Of a stretch of 64,000 nucleotides of DNA, positions 14,301 through 64,000 are shown one piece after another. The notes beneath the pieces were generated by a model. The model was not told the origin of the DNA. It saw only the letters and a list, made by a program, of their open reading frames with translations, and did not search any database. A program made the translations under genes and the position numbers. Location: NCBI GenBank assembly GCA_965202585.1, contig OZ241828.1, forward strand, positions 46,438,001 to 46,502,000, given 5' to 3'. The stretch's first letter is position 1. Each line of letters begins with the position of its first letter. This DNA comes from Thalia democratica. Lineage: Eukaryota.

Positions 14301-15791
14301 AAGTTAATGAAAAGTCTTCTTTACAAACAAAGTTTCAAAAGTTATAAGTCGTTTATGACACAATGAAAAGAAAATAAAGCCTTTTCTTATTAGCGCATAT
14401 CACAAAAACAAACCTTTTTTACGATAAAATAAAATGTTTGCATTTTTTATTGCATTTGATTGTTAAAGCATTTTTAATACTCGTTGATTTAACATTTACA
14501 ATTTTGGAAAGAAAGCACAAGCGAAACAAGTAAAAGTTTATGAATAAACAGCTTTTTTGGTTAATAAACGAAACTTTCTTTTTCTCTTTTTCGTCTTTAT
14601 CATGGATCAAAGTAGAAAAAAAAAAGCATATTTCAAAAGATAGGAAAATTGTTGTTATTAGTATTATTTCTTATTAAATATGTAATTGTAACGGTGCTTA
14701 CTTTTATCTTTTTATTTATTCATAAAAGTTAAGTTTATTGTTGAATTCACCCCTTTAGTAGGTATCAAATATTTTTCAATCATTTAAGTATAAATTTCCT
14801 TAACTTTTTTAACCACATTATTACATAAATAAACTGAATAGTTAAACTTTTAGCGTAAAGTACTGACAAAGTTTAAAGTTAGAATATTTCATTTTTACCT
14901 TTTTAAAAGAAGTTACGAACCATCTTTCAAAAAGTTTCATCTTATTTTGTTATAAGTTTTCGTTAGAGTTTTTTAGGTCTTAAAATATTTTCTACTTAAT
15001 TTTTTTATTCTTTAAAAGTTTTAGGCTCAGTTTTTTTAATTTGTATGTTCTAGCTTGACAACTTTTGGTATATATTTTGAATACAACTTTTTCGTATAAA
15101 TTTATTACGTAGTTAATTTTTGCTTAGTTTTATTTTCTTTTTATCGTTTGTTTTATTTGCTAAAGTTTAAAACTTAAAACTTTGAGAATTAATTTTCTAT
15201 AGCTCGTAATAGATTGTAGAAGCATGTGATGTACGACTCGATAACCGAAAGATTCATTCGTACACCAGGTCTTAAGACCATATTTTTTACGCTTTTCATT
15301 TGTCGTTCAACATACGATATTAATTTTAAAAACATTTTTAAAGATCAAAGTAATAAAAGTAACTGAGTGAAATTTAACTCAAAAGACTTTTACACACCAT
15401 GTCTATTATGGATGAGCACTTATTTAAATTTTGTCTTAAACAAACTTAAAATTTTATTGTATTGGGCTCTCTTCATTGACAGAATATTAAAATATAATAA
15501 TAACTAAATAAAAAGCCTTTCGAAAAATATTTAACAGTACTTCTAGTTATTAAATTAATAAATAATAATCTAATATTTTGTTTTAAAAAAAGATTTTTAT
15601 TTCACTGAAGTTTCTTAATTTTAATTAAAAAAAAATTGTTTTAACAGTTTATTAATCGAACAAAAAGCACTAAAAAGTGAATTAAAAGACTAGTTAAAAT
15701 TAAAAGAATATATATAGCGGCCTTTAACAACTAATAGTAAACAATAAATTTGTTAAAAGTTAAAATAAACTTTAAAGTGAGTTTTCTTATA

Positions 15792-15797
15792 TTTATT
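15792..15797 (-). terminator. Candidate polyadenylation signal AATAAA of the giant gene
   Basis: First AATAAA downstream of the stop codon (42 nt). The region is AT-rich, so chance occurrence is likely. Confidence 0.35.
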
Positions 15798-15839
15798 ATG
15801 CAAAAAGATTCACCAACACACCAAATATAAAGTTTTTAT

Positions 15840-16132
15840 CTAAAGTTCGTCGTCACATTTTCTAGAACGGCATCCACATTGGGTTGCGCTCATGTAAGAA
15901 ACGGTTTTTACAGAGTTATCAGGACAAGTAAGTTGCACCATTTTTATTTCAGTTTCTTGTGCGTGACAACAACTGCAAGTTCTTGTAAAGTTTCCAGACT
16001 CGAAAGAGTACACAGAACTGCTGACACAAGCTCCTTCACAAACTGACATTTCAACTGCTGTTTCGCTAGTGCACTCATCGATTGTTAACATTTCTTCGTA
16101 AGTTTTCTTCATTGCACAACTGCTTAGTTTTT
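15840..16132 (-). CDS. Terminal exon: C-terminal cystine knot (CTCK), ending KCDDEL*
   Basis: Acceptor ttttacag. Translation EKLSSCAMKK...CEGACVSS...TCSCCHAQ...TCPDNS...QCGCRSRKCDDEL*. The CxGxC, CSCC and CxC pattern matches vWF/mucin CTCK. Stop TAG at 15840-15842. Confidence 0.92.
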
Positions 16133-20420: not shown

Positions 20421-20475
<55 letters not shown>

Positions 20476-23400
20476 GATATCAATGTAATGTAATAGTTAT
20501 GTTGAAATAGCAGTAAGTTATAATTTAAGTAGACTTATTTAAGAAATACTAGTCTTAGTATGGTATATTTTATTAAAAAGTTCAAAAAAACATCGGTTGG
20601 TACTAGATTTTGTCAAAAATGGTTACCTGTAAGTTGGACAGCAATCGAACTCTTCTTCTATAAGAACTTTACGTTCTCCATCTTTACAGTAAGTAGATGG
20701 ACATCTTTCCTGAGCACAAAGACACCTATATTCTGGACAACAAGCTCCATCAACATTTATAGCGACCATTTCGTAGTTTTCACCGCAAACTGGTTTTGTA
20801 CTATTGCTACACATGCTGTGGTCACATACGCATTCGTACGTAGGACAACAACCTGTCACCTTCTGAACAAGTTCATATCCATGTGCACATTGTGGTGTAT
20901 CATTTTGTGGACAATCTATAGCAGAACATTGAGTTCCACTTTCTAAGCAAGTGCACTCCTCACAATTCTCGTTCCAGACTTCTCCGATCTAGTTTAGTAA
21001 AATTTACTTAACGAACTCATTGAAATAAAAAAGAAATGTTTAAAGAATCTAGTTTAAGTCTTAAAAAATTTGTAATTGTGCTAAAAAAAAATTACAATTT
21101 TTTTTTTAATTAATGTATTATAAAGAAAATAAACTTTTTTAGTTTTTTTAATTGCATCATAGCATTACAATTTTAACTACAATAAAGAGTATTAGTGCTA
21201 AACTTTAGAAGTATAATGTTTTTACTATAAGGAAACAAAATTTTATTAGAGTAAAAATAAGTCAAATTAAATAACTATATTTAAATTGTCGTTTTTATAA
21301 TGAGATATAGTTATTAAAAAAAAAGTACTACGGGTTTTTATTTAGAGAAAAAAGAAACATAATTATTTTTACTTTTAAAAAACAAATAAATTGTCATTAC
21401 TAGAATTAAAAAGTATAAAGTGCTTTATATACTTTGTCCAACATTTAAAACTGGATAAAAGAAATTAAAAACTAACAGTTTTTGTTCCACTCTCACAAGT
21501 TTTATCAGAAGGAACACAAGATGGACAACAATCGCCAGACAAAATAGTCTGTGAATAACCTTGAGGACATGTAACGGTATCACAAATTTCTTGAGTACAT
21601 TTCGAAATACCACCAATACAAATACAATTTGTACATCCTCTGTTTTCTTTCCAAACTGAGCCACTCTAATTTTGAAAATTTTGAATTTAAAAAATTAACT
21701 TTATAGTATTGAATTGTAAAAATTAAGTCAGAAGAGTGACCATAAAAAAAAACTAACAGTATAATAATTATGTTCAGTAGTACATGGACAGTCTTCGCTT
21801 GAAACACAGTTTCTTCCGTCCCAAACTTGGCTACTAGGGCATGGGAGAGAATCTTTAATATTTATACCTGGGCATGTTTGTAAAGTGTTGTTACTAGACA
21901 AAAGTGAAGAAGATTCAATCTTTTTATCCGCAGAAATAAATGTGTATGCATTGTTATTTGACAATTGCGACACTTTTCCATTTTCGACAAGAACCGGTGT
22001 ATATCCTGCGGCATATCCGCCAGCAAATGGTTTGTCACCGGCCATTGGTTTGCCTCCTACAGCCAATCGTGCTGAGTCAAAGTCTCCGAGGTCTTTGTGA
22101 TCGTCAGCGAACACAATACCGTCGTGATCTCCGTAGTAAGAACCGTCTCCCTTGAATGCTGCTGGCATGAAACCTCCGTCGGTAACAATTGAGCTGTCAC
22201 CGTAGACTTCGTCATCTGCAGCTGGCACTCCTTGGATCACAATGGCTTGTTGAGCTGGAGCTGAATCTCCCTTGAACGGCTTGCCGCTGTCGGCAGCAAC
22301 CGGTGAGTATCCTGCGCCGTATCCGCCAGCAAATGGTCTGTCACCGGCCATTGGTTTGCCTCCTACAGCCAATCGTGCTGAGTCAAAGTCTCCGAGGTCT
22401 TTGTGATCGTCAGCGAACACAATACCGTCGTGATCTCCGTAGTAAGAACCGTCTCCCTTGAATGCTGCTGGCATGAAACCTCCGTCGGTAACAATTGAGC
22501 TGTCACCGTAGACTTCGTCATCTGCAGCTGGCACTCCTTGGATCACAATGGCTTGTTGAGCTGGTGCTGAATCTCCCTTGAACGGCTTGCCGCTGTCGGC
22601 AGCAACCGGTGAGTATCCTGCGCCGTATCCGCCAGCAAATGGTCTGTCACCGGCCATTGGTTTGCCTCCTACAGCCAATCGTGCTGAGTCAAAGTCTCCG
22701 AGGTCTTTGTGATCGTCAGCGAACACAATACCGTCGTGATCTCCGTAGTAAGAACCGTCTCCCTTGAATGCTGCTGGCAAGAAACTTCCGTCGGTAACAA
22801 TTGAGCTGTCACCGTAGACTTCGTCATCTGCAGCTGGCACTCCTTGGATCACAATGGCTTGTTGAGCTGGTGCTGAATCTCCCTTGAACGGCTTGCCGCT
22901 GTCGGCAGCAACCGGTGAGTATCCTGCGCCGTATCCGCCAGCAAATGGTCTGTCACCTGCCATTGGTTTGCCTCCTACAGCCAATCGTGATGGATGGTCG
23001 TAACCCTTGTCCTTATGGTTGTTATCGAAGATAACACCTTGATCGTCTGCAACGTATCCGGCGTTGTCGAAGAACGGAACGTCAAACTTGTTACTGTCAC
23101 TGAGAACTTGTTCGTCAGCGTAGAAAGCGTCACTCAATGCTGGAGCACCTCCAACAATAATGGCTTGTTGAGCTGGTGCTGAATCTCCCTTGAACGGCTT
23201 GCCGCTGTCGGCAGCAACCGGTGAGTATCCTGCGCCGTATCCGCCAGCAAATGGTCTGTCACCGGCCATTGGTTTGCCTCCTACAGCCAATCGTGCTGAG
23301 TCAAAGTCTCCGAGGTCTTTGTGATCGTCAGCGAACACAATACCGTCGTGATCTCCGTAGTAAGAACCGTCTCCCTTGAATGCTGCTGGCATGAAACCTC

Positions 23401-26400
23401 CGTCGGTAACAATTGAGCTGTCACCGTAGACTTCGTCATCTGCAGCTGGCACTCCTTGGATCACAATGGCTTGTTGAGCTGGAGCTGAATCTCCCTTGAA
23501 CGGCTTGCCGCTGTCGGCAGCAACCGGTGAGTATCCTGCGCCGTATCCGCCAGCAAATGGTCTGTCACCGGCCATTGGTTTGCCTCCTACAGCCAATCGT
23601 GCTGAGTCAAAGTCTCCGAGGTCTTTGTGATCGTCAGCGAACACAATACCGTCGTGATCTCCGTAGTAAGAACCGTCTCCCTTGAATGCTGCTGGCATGA
23701 AACCTCCGTCGGTAACAATTGAGCTGTCACCGTAGACTTCGTCATCTGCAGCTGGCATTCCTTGGATCACAATGGCTTGTTGAGCTGGTGCTGAATCTCC
23801 CTTGAACGGCTTGCCGCTGTCGGCAGCAACCGGTGAGTATCCTGCGCCGTATCCGCCAGCAAATGGTCTGTCACCTGCCATTGGTTTGCCTCCTACAGCC
23901 AATCGTGCTGAGTCAAAGTCTCCGAGGTCTTTGTGATCGTCAGCGAACACAATACCGTCGTGATCTCCGTAGTAAGAACCGTCTCCCTTGAATGCTGCTG
24001 GCATGAAACCTCCGTCGGTAACAATTGAGCTGTCACCGTAGACTTCGTCATCTGCAGCTGGCACTCCTTGGATCACAATGGCTTGTTGAGCTGGTGCTGA
24101 ATCTCCCTTGAACGGCTTGCCGCTGTCGGCAGCAACCGGTGAGTATCCTGCGCCGTATCCGCCAGCAAATGGTCTGTCACCTGCCATTGGTTTGCCTCCT
24201 ACAGCCAATCGTGATGGATGGTCGTAACCCTTGTCCTTGTGGTTTTTATCGAAGATAACACCTTGATCGTCTGCAACGTATCCGGCGTTGTCGAAGAACG
24301 GAACGTCGAACTTGTTACCGTCACTGAGAACTTGTTCGTCAGCGTAGAAAGCGTCACTCAATGCTGGAGCACCTCCAACAATAATGGCTTGTTGAGCTGG
24401 AGCTGAATCTCCCTTGAACGGCTTGCCGCTGTCGGCAGCAACCGGTGAGTATCCTGCGCCGTATCCGCCAGCAAATGGTCTGTCACCGGCCATTGGTTTG
24501 CCTCCTACAGCCAATCGTGCTGAGTCAAAGTCTCCGAGGTCTTTGTGATCGTCAGCGAACACAATACCGTCGTGATCTCCGTAGTAAGAACCGTCTCCCT
24601 TGAATGCTGCTGGCATGAAACCTCCGTCGGTAACAATTGAGCTGTCACCGTAGACTTCGTCATCTGCAGCTGGCACTCCTTGGATCACAATGGCTTGTTG
24701 AGCTGGTGCTGAATCTCCCTTGAACGGCTTGCCGCTGTCGGCAGCAACCGGTGAGTATCCTGCGCCGTATCCGCCAGCAAATGGTCTGTCACCTGCCATT
24801 GGTTTGCCTCCTACAGCCAATCGTGATGGATGGTCGTAACCCTTGTCCTTGTGGTTGTCATCGAAGATAACACCTTGATCGTCTGCAACGTATCCGGCGT
24901 TGTCGAAGAACGGAACGTCGAACTTGTTACCGTCACTGAGAACTTGTTCGTCAGCGTAGAAAGCGTCACTCAATGCTGGAGCACCTCCAACAATAATGGC
25001 TTGTTGAGCTGGAGCTGAATCTCCCTTGAACGGCTTGCCGCTGTCGGCAGCAACCGGTGAGTATCGTGCGCCGTATCCGCCAGCAAATGGTCTGTCACCG
25101 GCCATTGGTTTGCCTCCTACAGCCAATCGTGCTGAGTCAAAGTCTCCGAGGTCTTTGTGATCGTCAGCGAACACAATACCGTCGTGATCTCCGTAGTAAG
25201 AACCGTCTCCCTTGAATGCTGCTGGCATGAAACCTCCGTCGGTAACAATTGAGCTGTCACCGTAGACTTCGTCATCTGCAGCTGGCACTCCTTGGATCAC
25301 AATGGCTTGTTGAGCTGGTGCTGAATCTCCCTTGAACGGCTTGCCGCTGTCGGCAGCAACCGGTGAGTATCCTGCGCCGTATCCGCCAGCAAATGGTCTG
25401 TCACCTGCCATTGGTTTGCCTCCTACAGCCAATCGTGATGGATGGTCGTAACCCTTGTCCTTGTGGTTGTTATCGAAGATAACACCTTGATCGCCTGCAA
25501 CGTATCCGGCGTTGTCGAAGAACGGAACGTCGAACTTGTTACCGTCACTGAGAACTTGTTCGTCAGCGTAGAAAGCGTCACTCAATGCTGGAGCACCTCC
25601 AACAATAATGGCTTGTTGAGCTGGAGCTGAATCTCCCTTGAACGGCTTGCCGCTGTCGGCAGCAACCGGTGAGTATCGTGCGCCGTATCCGCCAGCAAAT
25701 GGTCTGTCACCGGCCATTGGTTTGCCTCCTACAGCCAATCGTGCTGAGTCAAAGTCTCCGAGGTCTTTGTGATCGTCAGCGAACACAATACCGTCGTGAT
25801 CTCCGTAGTAAGAACCGTCTCCCTTGAATGCTGCTGGCATGAAACCTCCGTCGGTAACAATTGAGCTGTCACCGTAGACTTCGTCATCTGCAGCTGGCAC
25901 TCCTTGGATCACAATGGCTTGTTGAGCTGGTGCTGAATCTCCCTTGAACGGCTTGCCGCTGTCGGCAGCAACCGGTGAGTATCCTGCGCCGTATCCGCCA
26001 GCAAATGGTCTGTCACCTGCCATTGGTTTGCCTCCTACAGCCAATCGTGATGGATGGTCGTAACCCTTGTCCTTGTGGTTGTTATCGAAGATAACACCTT
26101 GATCGTCTGCAACGTATCCGGCGTTGTCGAAGAACGGAACGTCGAACTTGTTACCGTCACTGAGAACTTGTTCGTCAGCGTAGAAAGCGTCACTCAATGC
26201 TGGAGCACCTCCAACAATAATGGCTTGTTGAGCTGGAGCTGAATCTCCCTTGAACGGCTTGCCGCTGTCGGCAGCAACCGGTGAGTATCCTGCGCCGTAT
26301 CCGCCAGCAAATGGTCTGTCACCGGCCATTGGTTTGCCTCCTACAGCCAATCGTGCTGAGTCAAAGTCTCCGAGGTCTTTGTGATCGTCAGCGAACACAA

Positions 26401-29400
26401 TACCGTCGTGATCTCCGTAGTAAGAACCGTCTCCCTTGAATGCTGCTGGCATGAAACCTCCGTCGGTAACAATTGAGCTGTCACCGTAGACTTCGTCATC
26501 TGCAGCTGGCACTCCTTGGATCACAATGGCTTGTTGAGCTGGTGCTGAATCTCCCTTGAACGGCTTGCCGCTGTCGGCAGCAACCGGTGAGTATCCTGCG
26601 CCGTATCCGCCAGCAAATGGTCTGTCACCGGCCATTGGTTTGCCTCCTACAGCCAATCGTGCTGAGTCAAAGTCTCCGAGGTCTTTGTGATCGTCAGCGA
26701 ACACAATACCGTCGTGATCTCCGTAGTAAGAACCGTCTCCCTTGAATGCTGCTGGCATGAAACCTCCGTCGGTAACAATTGAGCTGTCACCGTAGACTTC
26801 GTCATCTGCAGCTGGCACTCCTTGGATCACAATGGCTTGTTGAGCTGGTGCTGAATCTCCCTTGAACGGCTTGCCGCTGTCGGCAGCAACCGGTGAGTAT
26901 CCTGCGCCGTATCCGCCAGCAAATGGTCTGTCACCTGCCATTGGTTTGCCTCCTACAGCCAATCGTGATGGATGGTCGTAACCCTTGTCCTTGTGGTTGT
27001 TATCGAAGATAACACCTTGATCGTCTGCAACGTATCCGGCGTTGTCGAAGAACGGAACGTCGAACTTGTTACCGTCACTGAGAACTTGTTCGTCAGCGTA
27101 GAAAGCGTCACTCAATGCTGGAGCACCTCCAACAATAATGGCTTGTTGAGCTGGAGCTGAATCTCCCTTGAACGGCTTGCCGCTGTCGGCAGCAACCGGT
27201 GAGTATCCTGCGCCGTATCCGCCAGCAAATGGTCTGTCACCTGCCATTGGTTTGCCTCCTACAGCCAATCGTGCTGAGTCAAAGTCTCCGAGGTCTTTGT
27301 GATCGTCAGCGAACACAATACCGTCGTGATCTCCGTAGTAAGAACCGTCTCCCTTGAATGCTGCTGGCATGAAACCTCCGTCGGTAACAATTGAGCTGTC
27401 ACCGTAGACTTCGTCATCTGCAGCTGGCACTCCTTGGATCACAATGGCTTGTTGAGCTGGTGCTGAATCTCCCTTGAACGGCTTGCCGCTGTCGGCAGCA
27501 ACCGGTGAGTATCCTGCGCCGTATCCGCCAGCAAATGGTCTGTCACCTGCCATTGGTTTGCCTCCTACAGCCAATCGTGATGGATGGTCGTAACCCTTGT
27601 CCTTGTGGTTTTTATCGAAGATAACACCTTGATCGTCTGCAACGTATCCGGCGTTGTCTAAGAACGGAACGTCGAACTTGTTACCGTCACTGAGAACTTG
27701 TTCGTCAGCGTAGAAAGCGTCACTCAATGCTGGAGCACCTCCAACAATAATGGCTTGTTGAGCTGGAGCTGAATCTCCCTTGAACGGCTTGCCGCTGTCG
27801 GCAGCAACCGGTGAGTATCCTGCGCCGTATCCGCCAGCAAATGGTCTGTCACCGGCCATTGGTTTGCCTCCTACAGCCAATCGTGCTGAGTCAAAGTCTC
27901 CGAGGTCTTTGTGATCGTCAGCGAACACAATACCGTCGTGATCTCCGTAGTAAGAACCGTCTCCCTTGAATGCTGCTGGCATGAAACCTCCGTCGGTAAC
28001 AATTGAGCTGTCACCGTAGACTTCGTCATCTGCAGCTGGCACTCCTTGGATCACAATGGCTTGTTGAGCTGGTGCTGAATCTCCCTTGAACGGCTTGCTG
28101 CTGTCGGCAGCAACCGGTGAGTATCCTGCGCCGTATCCGCCAGCAAATGGTCTGTCACCTGCCATTGGTTTGCCTCCTACAGCCAATCGTGATGGATGGT
28201 CGTAACCCTTGTCCTTGTGGTTGTTATCGAAGATAACACCTTGATCGTCTGCAACGTATCCGGCGTTGTCGAAGAACGGAACGTCGAACTTGTTACCGTC
28301 ACTGAGAACTTGTTCGTCAGCGTAGAAAGCGTCACTCAATGCTGGAGCACCTCCAACAATAATGGCTTGTTGAGCTGGAGCTGAATCTCCCTTGAACGGC
28401 TTGCCGCTGTCGGCAGCAACCGGTGAGTATCGTGCGCCGTATCCGCCAGCAAATGGTCTGTCACCGGCCATTGGTTTGCCTCCTACAGCCAATCGTGCTG
28501 AGTCAAAGTCTCCGAGGTCTTTGTGATCGTCAGCGAACACAATACCGTCGTGATCTCCGTAGTAAGAACCGTCTCCCTTGAATGCTGCTGGCATGAAACC
28601 TCCGTCGGTAACAATTGAGCTGTCACCGTAGACTTCGTCATCTGCAGCTGGCACTCCTTGGATCACAATGGCTTGTTGAGCTGGTGCTAAATCTCCCTTG
28701 AACGGCTTGCCGCTGTCGGCAGCAACCGGTGAGTATCCTGCGCCGTATCCGCCAGCAAATGGTCTGTCACCTGCCATTGGTTTGCCTCCTACAGCCAATC
28801 GTGATGGATGGTCGTAACCCTTGTCCTTGTGGTTGTTATCGAAGATAACACCTTGATCGTCTGCAACGTATCCGGCGTTGTCGAAGAACGGAACGTCGAA
28901 CTTGTTACCGTCACTGAGAACTTGTTCGTCAGCGTAGAAAGCGTCACTCAATGCTGGAGCACCTCCAACAATAATGGCTTGTTGAGCTGGAGCTGAATCT
29001 CCCTTGAACGGCTTGCCGCTGTCGGCAGCAACCGGTGAGTATCGTGCGCCGTATCCGCCAGCAAATGGTCTGTCACCGGCCATTGGTTTGCCTCCTACAG
29101 CCAATCGTGCTGAGTCAAAGTCTCCGAGGTCTTTGTGATCGTCAGCGAACACAATACCGTCGTGATCTCCGTAGTAAGAACCGTCTCCCTTGAATGCTGC
29201 TGGCATGAAACCTCCGTCGGTAACAATTGAGCTGTCACCGTAGACTTCGTCATCTGCAGCTGGCACTCCTTGGATCACAATGGCTTGTTGAGCTGGTGCT
29301 GAATCTCCCTTGAACGGCTTGCCGCTGTCGGCAGCAACCGGTGAGTATCCTGCGCCGTATCCGCCAGCAAATGGTCTGTCACCGGCCATTGGTTTGCCTC

Positions 29401-53400: not shown

Positions 53401-56400
53401 CTTGTTCGTCAGCGTAGAAAGCGTCACTCAATGCTGGAGCACCTCCAACAATAATGGCTTGTTGAGCTAGTGCTGAATCTCCCTTGAACGGCTTGCCGCT
53501 GTCGGCAGCAACCGGTGAGTATCCTGCACCGTATCCGCCAGCAAATGGTCTGTCACCTGCCATTGGTTTGCCTCCTACAGCCAATCGTGATGGATGGTCG
53601 TAACCCTTGTCCTTGTGGTTGTTATCGAAGATAACACCTTGATCGTCTGCAACGTAGCCGGCGTTGTCGAAGAACGGAACATCGAACTTGTTACCGTCAC
53701 TGAGAACTTGTTCGTCAGCGTAGACAGCGTCACTCAATGCTGGAGCACTTCCAACAATAATGGCTTGTTGAGCTGGTGCTGAATCTCCCTTGAACGGCTT
53801 GCCGCTGTCGGCAGCAACCGGTGAGTATCCTGCGCCGTATCCGCCAGCAAATGGTCTGTCACCGGCCATTGGTTTGCCTCCTACAGCCAATCGTGCTGAG
53901 TCAAAGTCTCCGAGGTCTTTGTGATCGTCAGCGAACACAATACCGTCGTGATCTCCGTAGTAAGAACCGTCTCCCTTGAATGCTGCTGGCATGAAACCTC
54001 CGTCGGTAACAATTGAGCTGTCACCGTAGACTTCGTCATCTGCAGCTGGCACTCCTTGGATCACAATGGCTTGTTGAGCTGGTGCTGAATCTCCCTTGAA
54101 CGGCTTGCCGCTGTCGGCAGCAACCGGTGAGTATCCTGCGCCGTATCCGCCAGCAAATGGTCTGTCACCTGCCATTGGTTTGCCACCTACAGCCAATCGT
54201 GCTGAGTCAAAGTCTCCGAGGTCTTTGTGATCGTCAGCGAACACAATACCGTCGTGATCTCCGTAGTAAGAACCGTCTCCCTTGAATGCTGCTGGCATGA
54301 AACCTCCGTCGGTAACAATTGAGCTGTCACCGTAGACTTCGTCATCTGCAGCTGGCACTCCTTGGATCACAATGGCTTGTTGAGCTGGTGCTGAATCTCC
54401 CTTGAACGGCTTGCCGCTGTCGGCAGCAACCGGTGAGTATCCTGCGCCGTATCCGCCAGCAAATGGTCTGTCACCTGCCATTGGTTTGCCTCCTACAGCC
54501 AATCGTGATGGATGGTCGTAACCCTTGTCCTTGTGGTTGTTATCGAAGATAACACCTTGATCGTCTGCAACGTATCCGGCGTTGTCGAAGAACGGAACGT
54601 CGAACTTGTTACCGTCACTGAGAACTTGTTCGTCAGCGTAGAAAGCGTCACTCAATGCTGGAGCACCTCCAACAATAATGGCTTGTTGAGCTGGAGCTGA
54701 ATCTCCCTTGAACGGCTTGCCGCTGTCGGCAGCAACCGGTGAGTATCCTGCGCCGTATCCAGAAGCAAATGGTCTGTCACCGGCCATTGGTTTGCCTCCT
54801 ACAGCCAATCGTGCTGAGTCAAAGTCTCCGAGGTCTTTGTGATCGTCAGCGAACACAATACCGTCGTGATCTCCGTAGTAAGAACCGTCTCCCTTGAATG
54901 CTGCTGGCATGAAACCTCCGTCGGTAACAATTGAGCTGTCACCGTAGACTTCGTCATCTGCAGCTGGCACTCCTTGGATCACAATGGCTTGTTGAGCTGG
55001 TGCTGAATCTCCCTTGAACGGCTTGCCGCTGTCGGCAGCAACCGGTGAGTATCCTGCGCCGTATCCGCCAGCAAATGGTCTGTCACCGGCCATTGGTTTG
55101 CCTCCTACAGCCAATCGTGATGGATGGTCGTAACCCTTGTCCTTGTGGTTGTTATCGAAGATAACACCTTGATCGTCTGCAACGTAGCCGGCGTTTTCGA
55201 AGAACGGAACGTCGAACTTGTTACCGTCACTGAGAACTTGTTCGTCAGCGTAGAAAGCGTCACTCAATGCTGGAGCACCTCCAACAATAATGGCTTGTTG
55301 AGCTGGAGCTGAATCTCCCTTGAACGGCTTGCCGCTGTCGGCAGCAACCGGTGAGTATCCTGCGCCGTATCCGCCAGCAAATGGTCTGTCACCGGCCATT
55401 GGTTTGCCTCCTACAGCCAATCGTGCTGAGTCAAAGTCTCCGAGGTCTTTGTGATCGTCAGCGAACACAATACCGTCGTGATCTCCGTAGTAAGAACCGT
55501 CTCCCTTGAATGCTCCTGGCATGAAACCTCCGTCGGTAACAATTGAGCTGTCACCGTAGACTTCGTCATCTGCAGCTGGCAATCCTTGGATCACAATGGC
55601 TTGTTGAGCTGGTGCTGAATCTCCCTTGAACGGCTTGCCGCTGTCGGCAGCAACCGGTGAGTATCCTGCGCCGTATCCGCCAGCAAATGGTCTGTCACCG
55701 GCCATTGGTTTGCCTCCTACAGCCAATCGTGATGGATGGTCGTAACCCTTGTCCTTGTGGTTGTTATCGAAGATAACACCTTGATCGTCTGCAACGTATC
55801 CGGCGTTGTCGAAGAACGGAACGTCGAACTTGTTACCGTCACTGAGAACTTGTTCGTCAGCGTAGAAAGCGTCACTCAATGCTGGAGCACCTCCAACAAT
55901 AATGGCTTGTTGAGCTAGTGCTGAATCTCCCTTGAACGGCTTGCCGCTGTCGGCAGCAACCGGTGAGTATCCTGCACCGTATCCGCCAGCAAATGGTCTG
56001 TCACCTGCCATTGGTTTGCCTCCTACAGCCAATCGTGATGGATGGTCGTAACCCTTGTCCTTGTGGTTGTTATCGAAGATAACACCTTGATCGTCTGCAA
56101 CGTAGCCGGCGTTGTCGAAGAACGGAACGTCGAACTTGTTACCGTCACTGAGAACTTGTTCGTCAGCGTAGACAGCGTCACTCAATGCTGGAGCACTTCC
56201 AACAATAATGGCTTGTTGAGCTGGTGCTGAATCTCCCTTGAACGGCTTGCCACTGTCGGCAGCAACCGGTGAGTATCCTGCGCCGTATCCGCCAGCAAAT
56301 GGTCTGTCACCGGCCATTGGTTTGCCTCCTACAGCCAATCGTGCTGAGTCAAAGTCTCCGAGGTCTTTGTGATCGTCAGCGAACACAATACCGTCGTGAT

Positions 56401-59400
56401 CTCCGTAGTAAGAACCGTCTCCCTTGAATGCTGCTGGCATGAAACCTCCGTCGGTAACAATTGAGCTGTCACCGTAGACTTCGTCATCTGCAGCTGGCAC
56501 TCCTTGGATCACAATGGCTTGTTGAGCTGGTGCTGAATCTCCCTTGAACGGCTTGCCGCTGTCGGCAGCAACCGGTGAGTATCCTGCGCCGTATCCGCCA
56601 GCAAATGGTCTGTCACCTGCCATTGGTTTGCCACCTACAGCCAATCGTGCTGAGTCAAAGTCTCCGAGGTCTTTGTGATCGTCAGCGAACACAATACCGT
56701 CGTGATCTCCGTAGTAAGAACCGTCTCCCTTGAATGCTGCTGGCATGAAACCTCCGTCGGTAACAATTGAGCTGTCACCGTAGACTTCGTCATCTGCAGC
56801 TGGCACTCCTTGGATCACAATGGCTTGTTGAGCTGGTGCTGAATCTCCCTTGAACGGCTTGCCGCTGTCGGCAGCAACCGGTGAGTATCCTGCGCCGTAT
56901 CCGCCAGCAAATGGTCTGTCACCGGCCATTGGTTTGCCTCCTACAGCCAATCGTGCTGAGTCAAAGTCTCCGAGGTCTTTGTGATCGTCAGCGAACACAA
57001 TACCGTCGTGATCTCCGTAGTAAGAACCGTCTCCCTTGAATGCTGCTGGCATGAAACCTCCGTCGGTAACAATTGAGCTGTCACCGTAGACTTCGTCATC
57101 TGCAGCTGGCACTCCTTGGATCACAATGGCTTGTTGAGCTGGTGCTGAATCTCCCTTGAACGGCTTGCCGCTGTCGGCAGCAACCGGTGAGTATCCTGCG
57201 CCGTATCCGCCAGCAAATGGTCTGTCACCTGCCATTGGTTTGCCTCCTACAGCCAATCGTGATGGATGGTCGTAACCCTTGTCCTTGTGGTTGTTATCGA
57301 AGATAACACCTTGATCGTCTGCAACGTATCCGGCGTTGTCGAAGAACGGAACGTCGAACTTGTTACCGTCACTGAGAACTTGTTCGTCAGCGTAGAAAGC
57401 GTCACTCAATGCTGGAGCACCTCCAACAATAATGGCTTGTTGAGCTGGAGCTGAATCTCCCTTGAACGGCTTGCCGCTGTCGGCAGCAACCGGTGAGTAT
57501 CCTGCGCCGTATCCGCCAGCAAATGGTCTGTCACCGGCCATTGGTTTGCCTCCTACAGCCAATCGTGCTGAGTCAAAGTCTCCGAGGTCTTTGTGATCGT
57601 CAGCGAACACAATACCGTCGTGATCTCCGTAGTAAGAACCGTCTCCCTTGAATGCTCCTGGCATGAAACCTCCGTCGGTAACAATTGAGCTGTCACCGTA
57701 GACTTCGTCATCTGCAGCTGGCAATCCTTGGATCACAATGGCTTGTTGAGCTGGTGCTGAATCTCCCTTGAACGGCTTGCCGCTGTCGGCAGCAACCGGT
57801 GAGTATCCTGCGCCGTATCCGCCAGCAAATGGTCTGTCACCGGCCATTGGTTTGCCTCCTACAGCCAATCGTGATGGATGGTCGTAACCCTTGTCCTTGT
57901 GGTTGTTATCGAAGATAACACCTTGATCGTCTGCAACGTATCCGGCGTTGTCGAAGAACGGAACGTCGAACTTGTTACCGTCACTGAAAACTTGTTCGTC
58001 AGCGTAGAAAGCGTCACTCAATGCTGGAGCACCTCCAACAATAATGGCTTGTTGAGCTAGTGCTGAATCTCCCTTGAACGGCTTGCCGCTGTCGGCAGCA
58101 ACCGGTGAGTATCCTGCACCGTATCCGCCAGCAAATGGTCTGTCACCTGCCATTGGTTTGCCTCCTACAGCCAATCGTGATGGATGGTCGTAACCCTTGT
58201 CCTTGTGGTTGTTATCGAAGATAACACCTTGATCGTCTGCAACGTAGCCGGCGTTGTCGAAGAACGGAACATCGAACTTGTTACCGTCACTGAGAACTTG
58301 TTCGTCAGCGTAGACAGCGTCACTCAATGCTGGAGCACTTCCAACAATAATGGCTTGTTGAGCTGGTGCTGAATCTCCCTTGAACGGCTTGCCGCTGTCG
58401 GCAGCAACCGGTGAGTATCCTGCGCCGTATCCGCCAGCAAATGGTCTGTCACCGGCCATTGGTTTGCCTCCTACAGCCAATCGTGCTGAGTCAAAGTCTC
58501 CGAGGTCTTTGTGATCGTCAGCGAACACAATACCGTCGTGATCTCCGTAGTAAGAACCGTCTCCCTTGAATGCTGCTGGCATGAAACCTCCGTCGGTAAC
58601 AATTGAGCTGTCACCGTAGACTTCGTCATCTGCAGCTGGCACTCCTTGGATCACAATGGCTTGTTGAGCTGGTGCTGAATCTCCCTTGAACGGCTTGCCG
58701 CTGTCGGCAGCAACCGGTGAGTATCCTGCGCCGTATCCGCCAGCAAATGGTCTGTCACCTGCCATTGGTTTGCCACCTACAGCCAATCGTGCTGAGTCAA
58801 AGTCTCCGAGGTCTTTGTGATCGTCAGCGAACACAATACCGTCGTGATCTCCGTAGTAAGAACCGTCTCCCTTGAATGCTGCTGGCATGAAACCTCCGTC
58901 GGTAACAATTGAGCTGTCACCGTAGACTTCGTCATCTGCAGCTGGCACTCCTTGGATCACAATGGCTTGTTGAGCTGGTGCTGAATCTCCCTTGAACGGC
59001 TTGCCGCTGTCGGCAGCAACCGGTGAGTATCCTGCGCCGTATCCGCCAGCAAATGGTCTGTCACCGGCCATTGGTTTGCCTCCTACAGCCAATCGTGCTG
59101 AGTCAAAGTCTCCGAGGTCTTTGTGATCGTCAGCGAACACAATACCGTCGTGATCTCCGTAGTAAGAACCGTCTCCCTTGAATGCTGCTGGCATGAAACC
59201 TCCGTCGGTAACAATTGAGCTGTCACCGTAGACTTCGTCATCTGCAGCTGGCACTCCTTGGATCACAATGGCTTGTTGAGCTGGTGCTGAATCTCCCTTG
59301 AACGGCTTGCCGCTGTCGGCAGCAACCGGTGAGTATCCTGCGCCGTATCCGCCAGCAAATGGTCTGTCACCTGCCATTGGTTTGCCTCCTACAGCCAATC

Positions 59401-62400
59401 GTGATGGATGGTCGTAACCCTTGTCCTTGTGGTTGTTATCGAAGATAACACCTTGATCGTCTGCAACGTATCCGGCGTTGTCGAAGAACGGAACGTCGAA
59501 CTTGTTACCGTCACTGAGAACTTGTTCGTCAGCGTAGAAAGCGTCACTCAATGCTGGAGCACCTCCAACAATAATGGCTTGTTGAGCTGGAGCTGAATCT
59601 CCCTTGAACGGCTTGCCGCTGTCGGCAGCAACCGGTGAGTATCCTGCGCCGTATCCGCCAGCAAATGGTCTGTCACCGGCCATTGGTTTGCCTCCTACAG
59701 CCAATCGTGCTGAGTCAAAGTCTCCGAGGTCTTTGTGATCGTCAGCGAACACAATACCGTCGTGATCTCCGTAGTAAGAACCGTCTCCCTTGAATGCTGC
59801 TGGCATGAAACCTCCGTCGGTAACAATTGAGTTGTCACCGTAGATTTCGTCATCTGCAGCTGGCACTCCTTGGATCACAATGGCTTGTTGAGCTGGTGCT
59901 GAATCTCCCTTGAACGGCTTGCCGCTGTCGGCAGCAACCGGTGAGTATCCTGCGCCGTATCCGCCAGCAAATGGTCTGTCACCTGCCATTGGTTTGCCTC
60001 CTACAGCCAATCGTGATGGATGGTCGTAACCCTTGTCCTTGTGGTTGTTATCGAAGATAACACCTTGATCGTCTGCAACGTATCCGGCGTTGTCGAAGAA
60101 CGGAACGTCGAACTTGTTACCGTCACTGAGAACTTGTTCGTCAGCGTAGAAAGCGTCACTCAATGCTGGAGCACCTCCAACAATAATGGCTTGTTGAGCT
60201 GGAGCTGAATCTCCCTTGAACGGCTTGCCGCTGTCGGCAGCAACCGGTGAGTATCCTGCGCCGTATCCAGAAGCAAATGGTCTGTCACCGGCCATTGGTT
60301 TGCCTCCTACAGCCAATCGTGCTGAGTCAAAGTCTCCGAGGTCTTTGTGATCGTCAGCGAACACAATACCGTCGTGATCTCCGTAGTAAGAACCGTCTCC
60401 CTTGAATGCTGCTGGCATGAAACCTCCGTCGGTAACAATTGAGCTGTCACCGTAGACTTCGTCATCTGCAGCTGGCACTCCTTGGATCACAATGGCTTGT
60501 TGAGCTGGTGCTGAATCTCCCTTGAACGGCTTGCCGCTGTCGGCAGCAACCGGTGAGTATCCTGCGCCGTATCCGCCAGCAAATGGTCTGTCACCTGCCA
60601 TTGGTTTGCCTCCTACAGCCAATCGTGATGGATGGTCGTAACCCTTGTCCTTGTGGTTGTTATCGAAGATAACACCTTGATCGTCTGCAACGTATCCGGC
60701 GTTGTCGAAGAACGGAACGTCGAACTTGTTACCGTCACTGAGAACTTGTTCGTCAGCGTAGAAAGCGTCACTCAATGCTGGAGCACCTCCAACAATAATG
60801 GCTTGTTGAGCTGGAGCTGAATCTCCCTTAAACGGCTTGCCGCTGTCGGCAGCAACCGGTGAGTATCCTGCGCCGTATCCGCCAGCAAATGGTCTGTCAC
60901 CGGCCATTGGTTTGCCTCCTACATCCAATCGTGCTGAGTCAAAGTCTCCGAGGTCTTTGTGATCGTCAGCGAACACAATACCGTCGTGATCTCCGTAGTA
61001 AGAACCGTCTCCCTTGAATGCTGCTGGCATGAAACCTCCGTCGGTAACAATTGAGCTGTCACCGTAGACTTCGTCATCTGCAGCTGGCACTCCTTGGATC
61101 ACAATGGCTTGTTGAGCTAGTGCTGAATCTCCCTTGAACGGCTTGCCGCTGTCGGCAGCAACCGGTGAGTATCCTGCGCCGTATCCGCCAGCAAATGGTC
61201 TGTCACCTGCCATTGGTTTTCCTCCTACAGCCAATCGTGCTGAGTCAAAGTCTCCGAGGTCTTTGTGATCGTCAGCGAACACAATACCGTCGTGATCTCC
61301 GTAGTAAGAACCGTCTCCCTTGAATGCTGCTGGCATGAAACCTCCGTCGGTAACAATTGAACTGTCACCGTAGACTTCGTCATATGCAGCTGGCACTCCT
61401 TGGATCACAATGGCTTGTTGAGCTGGTGCTGAATCTCCCTTGAACGGCTTGCCGCTGTCGGCAGCAACCGGTGAGTATCCTGCGCCGTATCCGCCAGCAA
61501 ATGGTCTGTCACCGGCCATTGGTTTGCCTCCTACAGCCAATCGTGCTGAGTCAAAGTCTCCGAGGTCTTTGTGATCGTCAGCGAACACAATACTGTCGTG
61601 ATCTCCGTAGTAAGAACCGTCTCCCTTGAATGCTGCTGGCATGAAACCTCCGTCGGTAACAATTGAGCTGTCACCGTAGACTTCGTCATCTGCAGCTGGC
61701 ACTCCTTGGATCACAATGGCTTGTTGAGCTGGTGCTGAATCTCCCTTGAACGGCTTGCCGCTGTCGGCAGCAACCGGTGAGTATCCTGCGCCGTATCCGC
61801 CAGCAAATGGTCTGTCACCGGCCATTGGTTTGCCTCCTACAGCCAATCGTGCTGAGTCAAAGTCTCCGAGGTCTTTGTGATCGTCAGCGAACACAATACC
61901 GTCGTGATCTCCGTAGTAAGAACCGTCTCCCTTGAATGCTGCTGGCATGAAACCTCCGTCGGTAACAATTGAGCTGTCACCGTAGACTTCGTCATCTGCA
62001 GCTGGCACTCCTTGGATCACAATGGCTTGTTGAGCTGGTGCTGAATCTCCCTTGAACGGCTTGCCGCTGTCGGCAGCAACCGGTGAGTATCCTGCGCCGT
62101 ATCCGCCAGCAAATGGTCTGTCACCTGCCATTGGTTTGCCTCCTACAGCCAATCGTGATGGATGGTCGTAATCCTTGTCCTTGTGGTTGTTATCGAAGAT
62201 AACACCTTGATCGTCTGCAACGTATCCGGCGTTGTCGAAGAACGGAACGTCGAACTTGTTACCGTCACTGAGAACTTGTTCGTCAGCGTAGAAAGCGTCA
62301 CTCAATAATGGAGCACCTCCAACAATAATGGCTTGTTGAGCTGGAGCTGAATCTCCCTTGAACGGCTTGCCGCTGTCGGCAGCAACCGGTGAGTATCCTG

Positions 62401-64000
62401 CGCCGTATCCGCCAGCAAATGGTCTGTCACCGGCCATTGGTTTGCCTCCTACAGCCAATCGTGCTGAGTCAAAGTCTCCGAGGTCTTTGTGATCGTCAGC
62501 GAACACAATACCGTCGTGATCTCCGTAGTAAGAACCGTCTCCCTTGAATGCTGCTGGCATGAAACCTCCGTCGGTAACAATTGAGCTGTCACCGTAGACT
62601 TCGTCATCTGCAGCTGGCACTCCTTGGATCACAATGGCTTGTTGAGCTGGAGCTGAATCTCCCTTGAACGGCTTGCCGCTGTCGGCAGCAACCGGTGAGT
62701 ATCCTGCGCCGTATCCGCCAGCAAATGGTCTGTCACCGGCCATTGGTTTGCCTCCTACAGTCAATCGTGCTGAGTCAAAGTCTCCGAGGTCTTTGTGATC
62801 GTCAGCGAACACAATACCGTCGTGATCTCCGTAGTAAGAACCGTCTCCCTTGAATGCTGCTGGCATGAAACCTCCGTCGGTAACAATTGAGCTGTCACCG
62901 TAGACTTCGTCATCTGCAGCTGGCACTCCTTGGATCACAATGGCTTGTTGAGCTGGTGCTGAATCTCCCTTGAACGGCTTGCCGCTGTCGGCAGCAACCG
63001 GTGAGTATCCTGCGCCGTATCCGCCAGCAAATGGTCTGTCACCGGCCATTGGTTTGCCTCCTACAGCCAATCGTGCTGAGTCAAAGTCTCCGAGGTCTTT
63101 GTGATCGTCAGCGAACACAATACGGTCGTGATCTCCGTAGTAAGAACCGTCTCCCTTGAATGCTCCTGGCATGAAACCTCCGTCGGTAACAATTGAGCTG
63201 TCACCGTAGACTTCGTCATCTGCAGCTGGCAATCCTTGGATCACAATGGCTTGTTGAGCTGGTGCTGAATCTCCCTTGAACGGCTTGCCGCTGTCGGCAG
63301 CAACCGGTGAGTATCCTGCGCCGTATCCGCCAGCAAATGGTCTGTCACCGGCCATTGGTTTGCCTCCTACAGCCAATCGTGCTGAGTCAAAGTCTCCGAG
63401 GTCTTTGTGATCGTCAGCGAACACAATACCGTCGTGATCTCCGTAGTAAGAACCGTCTCCCTTGAATGCTGCTGGCATGAAACCTCCGTCGGTAACAATT
63501 GAGCTGTCACCGTAGACTTCGTCATCTGCAGCTGGCACTCCTTGGATCACAATGGCTTGTTGAGCTGGTGCTGAATCACCCTTGAACGGCTTGCCGCTGT
63601 CGGCAGCAACCGGTGAGTATCCTGCGCCGTATCCGCCAGCAAATGGTCTGTCACCTGCCATTGGTTTGCCTCCTACAGCCAATCGTGATGGATGGTCGTA
63701 ACCCTTGTCCTTGTGGTTGTTATCGAAGATAACACCTTGATCGTCTGCAACGTATCCGGCGTTGTCGAAGAACGGAACGTCGAACTTGTTACCGTCACTG
63801 AGAACTTGTTCGTCAGCGTAGAAAGCGTCACTCAATGCTGGAGCACCTCCAACAATAATGGCTTGTTGAGCTGGAGCTGAATCTCCCTTGAACGGCTTGC
63901 CGCTGTCGGCAGCAACCGGTGAGTATCCTGCGCCGTATCCGCCAGCAAATGGTCTGTCACCGGCCATTGGTTTGCCTCCTACAGCCAATCGTGCTGAGTC
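15840..64000 (-). CDS. Giant secreted vWF/gel-forming-mucin-family protein (5'-truncated in window; 17 exons; at least 15,275 aa) with a non-PTS Asp/Gly/Ala/Tyr-rich tandem repeat domain
   Basis: All 16 introns are GT-AG and every exon phase matches by manual translation. 14,081 codons from the giant exon plus 1,194 aa from 16 Cys-rich exons. The domain order VWC-VWD-C8-TIL-VWC(n)-CTCK is the established vWF/mucin C-terminal arrangement. Confidence 0.93.
16285..16465 (-). CDS. Exon: VWC-like module
   Basis: VGQTWAAKNDTCTSCKCEM...GCCQYCET; ttttag acceptor, gtttgt donor, phase 0 to 1. Confidence 0.88.
16539..16789 (-). CDS. Exon: VWC module
   Basis: SCSPPDMCVHNDESYKPGTTWNEDICTECSC...ACCGDCVPTTCHYDGVEHT; donor gtaagt, phase 1 to 0. 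Confidence 0.9.
16978..17255 (-). CDS. Exon: Cys-rich VWC-like repeats
   Basis: SLCPLNELKCESW...SCCTQTRCECD...CCKKSTCVC...CGCKQ; donor gttagt, phase 2 to 1. Confidence 0.88.
17327..17523 (-). CDS. Exon: Cys-rich VWC-like repeats
   Basis: KMIDQSKCCVETTQCECDSTQC...SCCPSVFEQVCTCD; donor gtaatt, phase 0 to 2. Confidence 0.88.
17716..17881 (-). CDS. Exon: Cys-rich VWC-like repeats
   Basis: CDRASCPSVEQPVCSEGEKLQVRNPGQCCVQYQCVCDSSTC...YKLK; donor gtgagt, phase 2 to 0. Confidence 0.88.
18014..18318 (-). CDS. Exon: Cys-rich VWC-like repeats
   Basis: DFKCPVFEKPICG...ECCVEFRCTC...ECCKSQVCEC...RCCNEYEC; donor gtaagt, phase 0 to 2. Confidence 0.88.
18389..18508 (-). CDS. Exon: Cys-rich VWC-like segment
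   Basis: VQMTAACDVPKTCRPNEITKTIATNTCCQVNECVPQETCK; phase 0 to 0; not in the ORF track. Confidence 0.85.
18638..18781 (-). CDS. Exon: end of TIL and start of VWC
   Basis: VLLDGVCVKPSNCPVCVDESGKGRFIGESWTKSDNLCVTSTCTNDGNI; donor gtgagt, phase 0 to 0. Confidence 0.87.
18875..19095 (-). CDS. Exon: end of C8 and TIL domain
   Basis: ATPCHALSSLANTCTTCDKVCVDWRNDELCPVECPVGTTYKACAQ...GCFCNDNM. The WR...CPxxCP...Y..C...GCxC pattern is C8-TIL. Phase 1 to 0. Confidence 0.9.
19163..19355 (-). CDS. Exon: linker and C8 domain
   Basis: IGSITDATIDSFNL...YQLCGEFMANQFASCSVDKLMYLGSCASYLSN; phase 0 to 1. Confidence 0.85.
19417..19656 (-). CDS. Exon: second half of VWD domain
   Basis: IEIDGENHELELEG...WSVSVPHTYQNQVTGLCGAC. 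The (Y/F)xxxxxGLCGxC motif is diagnostic of VWD. Donor gtaagt. Confidence 0.92.
19722..19939 (-). CDS. Exon: first half of VWD domain
   Basis: CVCKGLSTYWTMFDHKL...GTFTLV...DFAVTVERAECDSAVCLTSITI. This corresponds to the VWD start CxxxGxxHYxTFD, without GDPH. Phase 1 to 0. Confidence 0.9.
20000..20226 (-). CDS. Exon: VWC module
   Basis: CEQVQCLDKNGVVYHAGDVF...CSECVCDKNGNPICQKKICP...GCCPLYTCS; donor gtaagt, phase 2 to 1. Confidence 0.9.
20360..20403 (-). ncRNA. Hammerhead ribozyme-like motif in an intron of the giant gene (sense orientation)
   Basis: Minus strand reads CUUGG-CUGAGGA-C-GCGU(AUUAA)ACGC-A-GAAA-CAGCUG-U-A-CCAAG: 5-bp stem I, 4-bp stem II with a C.A mismatch at the closing position, palindromic stem III ACAGCUGU, GUA triplet. 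It lies between (TA)n tracts. Confidence 0.65.
20421..20468. repeat. (TA)n microsatellite
   Basis: About 48 bp of near-perfect AT dinucleotide repeat in intron 20227-20626. Confidence 0.95.
20627..20988 (-). CDS. Exon: VWC and VWC-like repeats
   Basis: IGEVWNENCEECTCLESGTQC...GCCPTYECVCDHSMC...ACCPEYRCLC...DCCPTY; phase 0 to 2. Confidence 0.9.
21477..21665 (-). CDS. Exon: VWC module
   Basis: SGSVWKENRGCTNCICIGGISKCTQEICDTVTCPQG...GDCCPSCVPSDKTCESGTKT; attag acceptor, gttagt donor, 189 nt, phase 0 to 0. The ORF track shows this region in the wrong frame. Confidence 0.92.
21758..64000 (-). CDS. Giant coding exon (at least 42,243 nt, open at window edge)
   Basis: No stop or frameshift from 64000 to 21758. 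Donor ACT|gttagt at 21757 is in phase with the next exon. The last ~110 aa are a degenerate repeat, a Ser/Asn-rich linker and CPG...CPSSQVWDGRNCVSSEDCPC. Confidence 0.92.
22064..63985 (-). repeat. Coding tandem array: 137 complete 306-bp units of two types (52 A, 85 B)
   Basis: 41,922 bp / 306 = 137. Shared 42 aa: AVGGKPMAGDRPFAGGYGAGYSPVAADSGKPFKGDSAPAQQA. A module: IIVGGAPALSDAFYADEQVLSDGNKFDVPFFDNAGYVADDQGVIFDNNHKDKGYDHPSRL. B module: IVIQGVPAADDEVYGDSSIVTDGGFMPAAFKGDGSYYGDHDGIVFADDHKDLGDFDSARL. A degenerate partial unit lies at ~21975-22063. Confidence 0.97.

Follow-up and report, generated by a model that had tools for sequence, protein, structure and literature searches.

A giant acidic, aromatic repeat array on a VWF/mucin-type scaffold in Thalia democratica: a candidate polymer of the tunicate feeding net

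Salps, doliolids, pyrosomes, appendicularians and sea squirts strain seawater in large volumes through nets that they secrete. The make-up of these nets decides which particles are retained and, to our knowledge, its molecular nature has never been established. The rectangular mucus net used for filter feeding is secreted by the endostyle (PMC6109156), and genes resembling von Willebrand factor (VWF) have been reported from this organ in three tunicate lineages: in Ciona, expression of the CiVWFL genes is specific to the endostyle (PMC8462739, in confirmation of Sasaki et al. 2003), in Botrylloides, VWF transcripts are markers of endostyle clusters (PMC12212465), and endostyle cells of Oikopleura strongly express a VWF-like gene, which the authors read as a sign of mucus secretion (bioRxiv 10.64898/2026.03.31.715263). 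VWF and the mucins are said to have diverged through different central modules, either VWA domains or repeats rich in Pro, Thr and Ser (PTS) (PMC6109156). Here we describe a minus-strand gene in a 64,000-nucleotide stretch of the Thalia democratica genome (assembly GCA_965202585.1, contig OZ241828.1, positions 46,438,001 to 46,502,000; hereafter the window), which joins a giant acidic and aromatic tandem array to a C-terminus of the VWF/mucin type. By orthology and analogy, we consider it probable that the gene encodes a giant secreted polymer of the VWF/gel-forming-mucin superfamily, orthologous to the ascidian VWF-like proteins, and best read as a fibre or gel, linked by disulfides, in the mucous filter net of the pharynx.

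The base composition of the window changes from 22-35% GC in positions 1-22,000 to 53% GC from about 22,000 to the end. The only open reading frame (ORF) of at least 200 aa in the window lies in this second part, on the minus strand at 21728-63988; it encodes 14,086 aa and is still open at the window edge (DSAR at 63989-64000), while the remaining five frames contain 289-742 stops each across the array. Tandem Repeats Finder reports one array at 21992-64000, with a period of 306 and 137.3 copies. The ORF contains 137 complete units, each of exactly 102 aa and without a single indel, running from unit 0 (63683-63988) to unit 136 (22067-22372). An earlier reading of the same DNA, made from the letters alone (hereafter the sequence-only reading), had placed the array at 22064-63985, which is the same array shifted by 3 nt from the unit borders found here. 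The exon that carries it is open over more than 42 kb and ends at a splice donor GT at 21757-21756. The units are of two types, 52 A and 85 B, whose alternation is not strict. Both types have their first 45 aa in common (97% nucleotide identity), a linker of Gly, Ala, Pro and Tyr, and end in a 57-aa acidic aromatic cassette that exists in an old A and an old B version with only 51% nucleotide identity (17 of the 57 aa), although the two retain a common hydrophobic and acidic pattern. Position 102 is Arg in 137 of the 137 units.

The consensus of the units contains, per 102 aa, 6 (A) or 8 (B) Ser+Thr, 14 (A) or 16 (B) Asp+Glu, 8 (A) or 7 (B) Lys+Arg, 5 Tyr in either type and no Cys, for a net charge of -6 (A) or -9 (B), in exact agreement with the counts given in the sequence-only reading. 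The motif GGYGAGY, announced there for nearly every unit, is found in 123 of 137, and the array charge, put at over -1000, is -1,067 by our computation. Inside the window the array amounts to 13,974 aa and ~1.42 MDa, with 688 Tyr, one Cys and no Trp; each unit has 11-12 aromatic residues and an isoelectric point of 4.2-4.5. Pro makes up 7% of the array units and Thr 0.7% of the ORF. No N-glycosylation sequon (N-x-S/T) was found in the array, nor is this central region rich in Pro, Thr and Ser as a strict definition of gel-forming mucins demands, with 6-8 Ser+Thr per 102 aa. Several Tyr in the units stand in acidic contexts, which would suit sulfation. Base usage also shifts within the gene: G+C at third codon positions is 0.45 in the array (22067-63988) and 0.29 in the C-terminal exons (15840-21665), the introns have 20% GC, and Asp is encoded mostly by GAC (74%) in the array but by GAT (71%) in the C-terminus. 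Either biased gene conversion in a recombining array or translational selection could account for this shift.

The RNA evidence for the gene comes from bulk marine plankton metatranscriptomes. Contigs from three runs, placed on 15835-21834, have 15 listed joints, all of them CT..AC on the plus strand, that is, GT..AG for a minus-strand gene, while one DNA run spans the same interval without joints. The resulting model has 17 exons, the giant array exon and 16 further ones, and is open through to the stop. The joined exons give an open frame of 1,297 aa with 161 Cys, which begins with the last degenerate unit and stops at the TAG at 15840-15842; the window as a whole encodes 15,270 aa or more of the protein. 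P0012, an independent JGI metatranscriptome protein of 1,493 aa, carries one A unit, one B unit, the linker and the entire C-terminus in one frame, and agrees with every splice choice of the model. At least 13 RNA runs, which come from several studies and include oligo-dT libraries, contain words of the array, with shares of 0.42-0.78. The gene is real, spliced and transcribed, and transcripts, on whose detection the sequence-only reading had let its proposal hang, exist for the array as well as for the C-terminus. The parts of the gene inside the window are the following.

22067..64000, minus strand: central array, 137 complete 102-aa units and a partial unit at the edge; part of one giant exon that extends past the window.
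21758..22066, minus strand: 3' end of the giant exon, with the last degenerate unit, a unique linker rich in Ser and Asn, and the first Cys-rich stretch; same junction in P0012.
21477..21665, minus strand: VWC exon (Pfam VWC E 3.8e-7; joint 20988/21477 in RNA contigs).
20627-20988 and 19998-20226, minus strand: two exons with VWC or VWC2L-like domains and CCP..C.C Cys modules (Pfam, RNA contigs).
19722-19937, 19417-19656, 19162-19355 and 18872-19094, minus strand: four exons with a VWD-C8-TIL assembly of D4 type (Pfam VWD, structure 7qcu, Atlas, TIL).
18635-18778, 18388-18505, 18014-18317, 17716-17881, 17327-17523 and 16977-17255, minus strand: six exons with successive Cys-rich modules that resemble VWC, in collinear order with the ascidian orthologues.
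16537-16788 and 16285-16463, minus strand: two exons with two VWC domains (Pfam VWC E 8.1e-9 and 1.3e-3).
15659..16132, minus strand: last exon, with the C-terminal cystine knot and the 3' untranslated region (Pfam Cys_knot E 2.2e-9; stop TAG at 15840-15842).

The 3' untranslated region is ~180 nt long, with an AATAAA near 15650. Within the 400-nt intron 20227-20626, which the RNA contigs skip as a whole, a hammerhead ribozyme was considered (motif at 20360-20403) and dropped, as there was no Rfam match at E values up to 0.1.

Downstream of the array and its linker, the protein continues with a VWC domain, VWC and Cys modules, the VWD-C8-TIL assembly, about ten Cys modules, two VWC domains and the cystine knot (CK). 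Pfam VWC matches fall on four exons. Pfam VWD matches residues 500-900 of P0012 with an E value of 2.8e-9 (37.9 bits against a cut-off of 22.9), the TIL match is weak (E 0.004), and C8 has no Pfam match of its own, its region being covered by the alignment to MUC2. The VWD/C8/TIL clusters of the Atlas score 0.95. Among solved structures, the Cys-rich part is matched best by the C-terminus of MUC2 (7qcu, E 1.5e-31), across VWD-C8-TIL, and next by FCGBP and VWF. The knot matches Pfam Cys_knot with E values of 2.2e-9 (38 bits against a cut-off of 24) and 3.6e-8 and, among solved structures, the CK of VWF (E 4e-9); it aligns without gaps to human VWF CK (4nt5, 9qrv), every VWF Cys in the aligned stretch being matched, including the C-x-C and the last Cys. 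These last residues reportedly form the interchain disulfides of the VWF knot (Zhou and Springer 2014). By its order of domains, the C-terminal part is the D4-to-CK half of a VWF/mucin polymer. The mucin framework proposed in the sequence-only reading is therefore borne out on the C-terminal side, by the VWC, VWD-C8-TIL and knot; the N-terminal half of the gene lies outside the window. Its other structural proposal, an acidic Gly/Ala/Tyr/Phe repeat in place of PTS, holds on a scaffold of the VWF/gel-forming-mucin type.

The similarity of the knot to VWF raises the question of whether the protein could instead serve in haemostasis or immunity, as a blood or wound-plug polymer made by blood cells in which the array would act as an extensible, shear-sensitive tether. 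The knot is indeed closest to VWF CK, and VWF-type components are reported to be induced in Botryllus rejection reactions (PMC2527998). Nevertheless, no VWA domain was matched by Pfam in the ORF or exons of the window, the D4-type region is nearer to MUC2 than to VWF, and the family has been reported from the endostyle, so that we regard such a role as very improbable.

To place the gene among its relatives, we used the last 994 residues of P0012 as query. Three proteins, one from a metatranscriptome (P0014, E 4e-194), one from Ciona intestinalis (F6TIX8, P0015, E 4e-191) and one from Styela clava named "von Willebrand factor-like" (P0016, E 3e-183), are collinear with it over virtually its whole length (99% coverage), at 35-36% identity. 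With the same query, the E value for vertebrate VWF is no better than 6.5e-62 and that for vertebrate mucins no better than 2.9e-38; the tunicate proteins form an orthologue group of their own. The boundary between repeat and Cys-rich part lies at the same place in the Thalia protein and the ascidian orthologues, and the orthologue sequence just before the Cys-rich part is likewise not of PTS type, being rich in Gly, Asp, Tyr, Ala and Ser. The group of Ciona F6TIX8 and the Styela protein probably corresponds to the CiVWFL endostyle markers of Sasaki et al. 2003. A closer relative was seen in three marine metatranscriptome proteins (P0013, P0001 and P0009), which represent a second closely related gene or the copy of a sister species; their C-terminus is 88% identical to that of the Thalia gene, with a different array-to-linker junction and with DDEN at the end instead of DDEL. 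Retention in the endoplasmic reticulum through this terminal DDEL was considered and ruled out, P0013 being so close a relative and ending in DDEN.

In Styela the gene also continues upstream into a giant array. Directly upstream of, and overlapping, the 1,707-aa NCBI model of "von Willebrand factor-like" there is an ORF of at least 5,063 aa (L003:26-15217, plus strand, on OZ123514.1 at ~3.87 Mb), open to the start of the DNA examined, of which the model retains only ~200 aa. This ORF consists of 206-aa units with a mean identity of 95% to their consensus, and each unit of two 103-aa halves that derive from an internal duplication (local score 102 against a null maximum of 64). Its composition is 14.5% Gly, 11.7% Ser, 11.0% Asp, 10.7% Ala, 4.6% Tyr, 4.1% Phe, 0.6% Pro and 0.1% Cys. 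The P0014 transcript also has sequence rich in Gly, Tyr and Asp upstream of its Cys-rich part, with a weak similarity to the Styela unit (E 0.005). Thalia and a benthic ascidian thus have the same kind of array, giant, Cys-free, acidic and aromatic, with modules of ~102-103 aa in two versions; this trait of tunicate VWF-like proteins is our own observation here and has no published definition. Homology between the Thalia and Styela repeats was not detected by hmmsearch (rank 374 among 2,000 shuffles), hhalign (probability 1.3%) or BLASTP (E 2.7); the two arrays have either diverged beyond recognition or arisen independently under the same demands.

The repeat itself belongs to no characterised family that we could find in Pfam, the ESM Atlas or an exhaustive protein search, as the sequence-only reading had supposed. 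In Pfam no family fits: there were only summed weak matches of TLD type, with no passing stretch, which we take as an artefact of repetition; the Styela array gave the same outcome. The best Atlas score was 0.60, to unrelated bacterial repeat proteins, and no cluster fits the repeat. An exhaustive HMMER search (phmmer) against 1.84 billion representative proteins returned six matches, five of them real, all fragments from eukaryotic metatranscriptomes of the Tara Oceans type or from ENA marine assemblies. The sixth, the bacterial P0007 (E 3e-5, 26% identity), is an immunoglobulin-like repeat rich in Asp and Gly and was judged spurious. Resilin, silk fibroin, Sfp1 and Mlig-ap1/2 were absent from the matches of this search. 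Two scans of JGI metagenome contigs yielded no further relatives and no N-terminal junction, and the repeat peptide strings had no real match in literature text; the central array domain was found neither in Pfam nor in public gene models nor in searchable papers. Short-read assemblers evidently collapse or mis-join the array, which explains why only fragments of the family are present in protein databases. Beside these results, a degenerate AT-rich ENA contig (P0006) has weak unit-like pieces, and in the JGI metatranscriptome contig that encodes P0012 there are array units in a different frame (L002:1-490), upstream of a masked run of N.

AlphaFold2 yielded no fold for the repeat: with shallow alignments, the predicted local distance difference test (pLDDT) was 46.7 for one unit (10 rows) and 34.6 for two units (9 rows). 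The units lie near the order/disorder boundary of the charge-hydropathy plot. These models weakly suggest that the array is non-globular or dependent on assembly.

The orthology, together with the published expression of VWF-like genes, suggests that the protein is secreted in the endostyle and serves the feeding net as a main polymer. On the model of VWF, MUC2 and MUC5B, chains would pair tail to tail through the cystine knot in the endoplasmic reticulum, multimerise through N-terminal D assemblies, be stored condensed with Ca2+ in granules and expand on secretion; released by glandular endostyle cells, they would make up the filaments or the gel of the mucous net in the pharynx. The polyanion would here be the protein itself, with Asp and Glu in place of charged glycans, and the abundant aromatic residues could provide cohesion and make particles adhere. 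Cross-linking or iodination of Tyr by peroxidase is conceivable in an endostyle; the cation binding and Tyr cross-linking put forward in the sequence-only reading stay hypothetical. A thyroglobulin-like iodination precursor, suggested by the Tyr-rich array and the endostyle family, was considered and set aside, the ascidian thyroid-hormone precursor now being reported as a Tg1-domain protein, in a paper that makes no mention of VWF-type proteins (PMC12992692). Iodination or dityrosine formation as a side reaction is possible but unsupported.

Several points weigh against a role in the net. Endostyle expression is carried over by name and orthology only, in a group of animals where Ciona alone has 17 multi-VWD proteins (PMC4948705), and the link between F6TIX8 and the published CiVWFL1/2 (KY.Chr1.1785, KY.Chr10.1161) is presumed. 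The transcript evidence stems from bulk samples and not from resolved tissues, and all evidence is at the level of DNA and RNA. The signal peptide and the N-terminal D assemblies would lie beyond the window, the formation of a fibre or gel has no support from the AlphaFold2 models and, given that no homology to the Styela repeat was detected, the central domains may not share a function.

The main competitor is a structural or adhesive matrix made outside the endostyle, be it the tunic or test, a glue between zooids, an egg or embryo coat, or a gut lining; the polymer would then lend its chemistry to one of these extracellular materials. The Gly/Ala/Tyr, acidic and aromatic-rich composition does recall elastomeric and adhesive proteins, and VWD-containing giants serve in invertebrate glues. 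There are also many tunicate multi-VWD proteins to choose from (PMC4948705), one of which, Ci-GFM1, lines the gut membrane (PMC6109156). On the other hand, Ci-GFM1 differs in design, with a chitin-binding domain and a small PTS region, and the nearest named relatives of the Thalia protein are VWF-like, a name borne by genes that are reported as endostyle markers in three tunicate lineages (PMC8462739, PMC12212465, bioRxiv 10.64898/2026.03.31.715263). We therefore consider a matrix of this kind unlikely, and the glue, cuticle, egg coat or capsule proposed in the sequence-only reading less likely than was supposed there.

The evolution of the array bears on two further explanations. Neighbouring AA pairs occur 4 times where 19.4 are expected, a number as low being reached in 0 of 20,000 shuffles; this over-dispersion of A units agrees with an ancestral (AB)n array to which B copies were added. 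The 137 units comprise 81 different nucleotide sequences, no exact shifted repeat is longer than 1.4 kb, and four-unit blocks recur at shifts of 7-8 units, which together indicate that the array can be resolved by long reads and evolves by unequal exchange. Units of one type are 98.7-99.2% identical. Their unique variants show a weak synonymous excess, with synonymous to non-synonymous counts of 16:32 (A) and 13:37 (B) against possible counts of 208:710 and 217:701; homogenisation hides most of the selection signal within the array. More can be learned from the distant relatives P0003, P0010, P0004 and P0011, which are 41-54% identical over one unit and keep the 102-aa period and both A-like and B-like cassettes. 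The 19 positions that are invariant in them, concentrated in the cassette and the R-L-A-V-G junction, argue for purifying selection on specific residues, rather than for a mere low-complexity spacer.

The high identity within each type, the weak synonymous excess and the recent multi-unit duplications are what one would expect if the array had no functional domain at all, and were a recently expanded coding minisatellite or an assembly artefact inflating an ordinary gene. This explanation is hardly tenable, given the number of distinct units and the short exact repeats that long reads can resolve, the retention of period, cassettes and key residues in relatives at 41-54% identity, the array words in poly(A)-selected RNA libraries, and the independent giant array at the same place in Styela. 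The strict conservation of unit length, the Arg at position 102 of every unit and the R-L-A-V-G invariant in all these relatives could also be read as signs of a polyprotein precursor, cleaved at Arg-Leu-Ala-Val-Gly every 102 aa into ~100-aa acidic A and B peptides, like profilaggrin or the nematode polyprotein antigens, with the VWF-type ends serving for packaging only. But a dibasic or furin-type motif is absent, the Arg being preceded by S-A, P-S, P-T or S-P; a cystine knot and a D4-type assembly typify covalent polymers and not precursors; and strict periodicity is predicted equally by unequal crossing-over. A precursor is thus improbable, and a secreted polymer of the filter net is the reading that we retain.

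The C-terminal similarity of the tunicate VWF-like family to VWF has reportedly been noted since Sasaki et al. in 2003. With about 1,000 C-terminal residues orthologous to ascidian VWF-like proteins and an analogous array in Styela, the "new class" of protein announced in the sequence-only reading was an overstatement; the design is that of an under-described tunicate family and not a one-off. New, as far as the searches reach, is the central array, megadalton in size, presumably poor in sugar, acidic and aromatic, in at least two distant tunicate lineages. Next to VWA domains and PTS repeats, this Cys-free acidic aromatic array of 5,000 to more than 14,000 residues is a third solution for the central module, found in the sister group of vertebrates. 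In current annotation these genes are cut short, the 1,707-aa Styela model hiding an exon of at least 5,063 aa, and the Thalia protein is among the largest chordate proteins and a candidate biomaterial. More tentatively, and as a possibility that we rate somewhat short of likely, the feeding net of pelagic tunicates, and probably of tunicates in general, may be built from a third VWF/mucin branch with a megadalton, sugar-poor, polyanionic aromatic array and not from a glycosylated mucin. If so, which marine microbes adhere to the mesh would depend on the surface chemistry of this protein, and the array would represent a fibre or gel material of a new protein type. Probes and peptides for testing the composition of the net are now at hand.

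Elsewhere in the window, a 150-aa ORF at 13690-14142 (minus strand) with a Cys/His-rich stretch ("...NNCVEGWHRRF...") resembles the remnant of a MULE-type transposase and has no Pfam match. Two short non-coding tandem arrays were observed, one at 33-214 with units of 41/83 nt, CCGG-rich cores and 92-94% identity, and one at 10224-10588 with 2.5 copies of a 147-nt unit at 88% identity. Weak, sub-threshold Rfam matches at 1-229 are probably due to chance.

Compared with the gel-forming mucins MUC2, MUC5AC and MUC5B, the Thalia protein arranges VWD-C8-TIL (D4), VWC and cystine knot as they do, and it has, like them, a polyanionic middle and a giant exon of tandem repeats at its centre. It differs in lacking a PTS domain (6-8% Ser+Thr) and N-glycosylation sequons, no CysD domains interrupt its array, and its negative charge comes from Asp and Glu, whereas that of mucins comes from sialylated or sulfated glycans. 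With VWF it shares the cystine knot, Cys for Cys in the aligned stretch, but no VWA domains are present in the Thalia window, and the tunicate orthologues match it far better than vertebrate VWF does (1e-190 against 1e-62). Sea-star Sfp1 and Macrostomum Mlig-ap1/2 combine VWD-type domains with repeats and, like resilin and silk fibroin (GAGAGY/GGY), are very large secreted extracellular materials with Gly/Ala/Tyr-rich motifs reminiscent of GGYGAGY; the exhaustive search showed no sequence relationship to these elastomeric and adhesive proteins, and the Thalia unit, unlike theirs, is a long (102 aa) and strongly acidic sequence of rather high complexity. The closest system is that of the ascidian VWF-like proteins, which are collinear over the C-terminal ~1,000 aa and, in Styela, carry a giant Cys-free acidic array in the same position. 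Even here the central parts differ: the Styela unit has 206 aa, strictly alternating halves, a high Ser content (11.7%) and almost no Pro, while the Thalia units have 102 aa, an irregular order of A and B and 7% Pro, and the ascidians possess, between array and C-terminus, an extra island of VWC and Cys modules that the Thalia protein does without.

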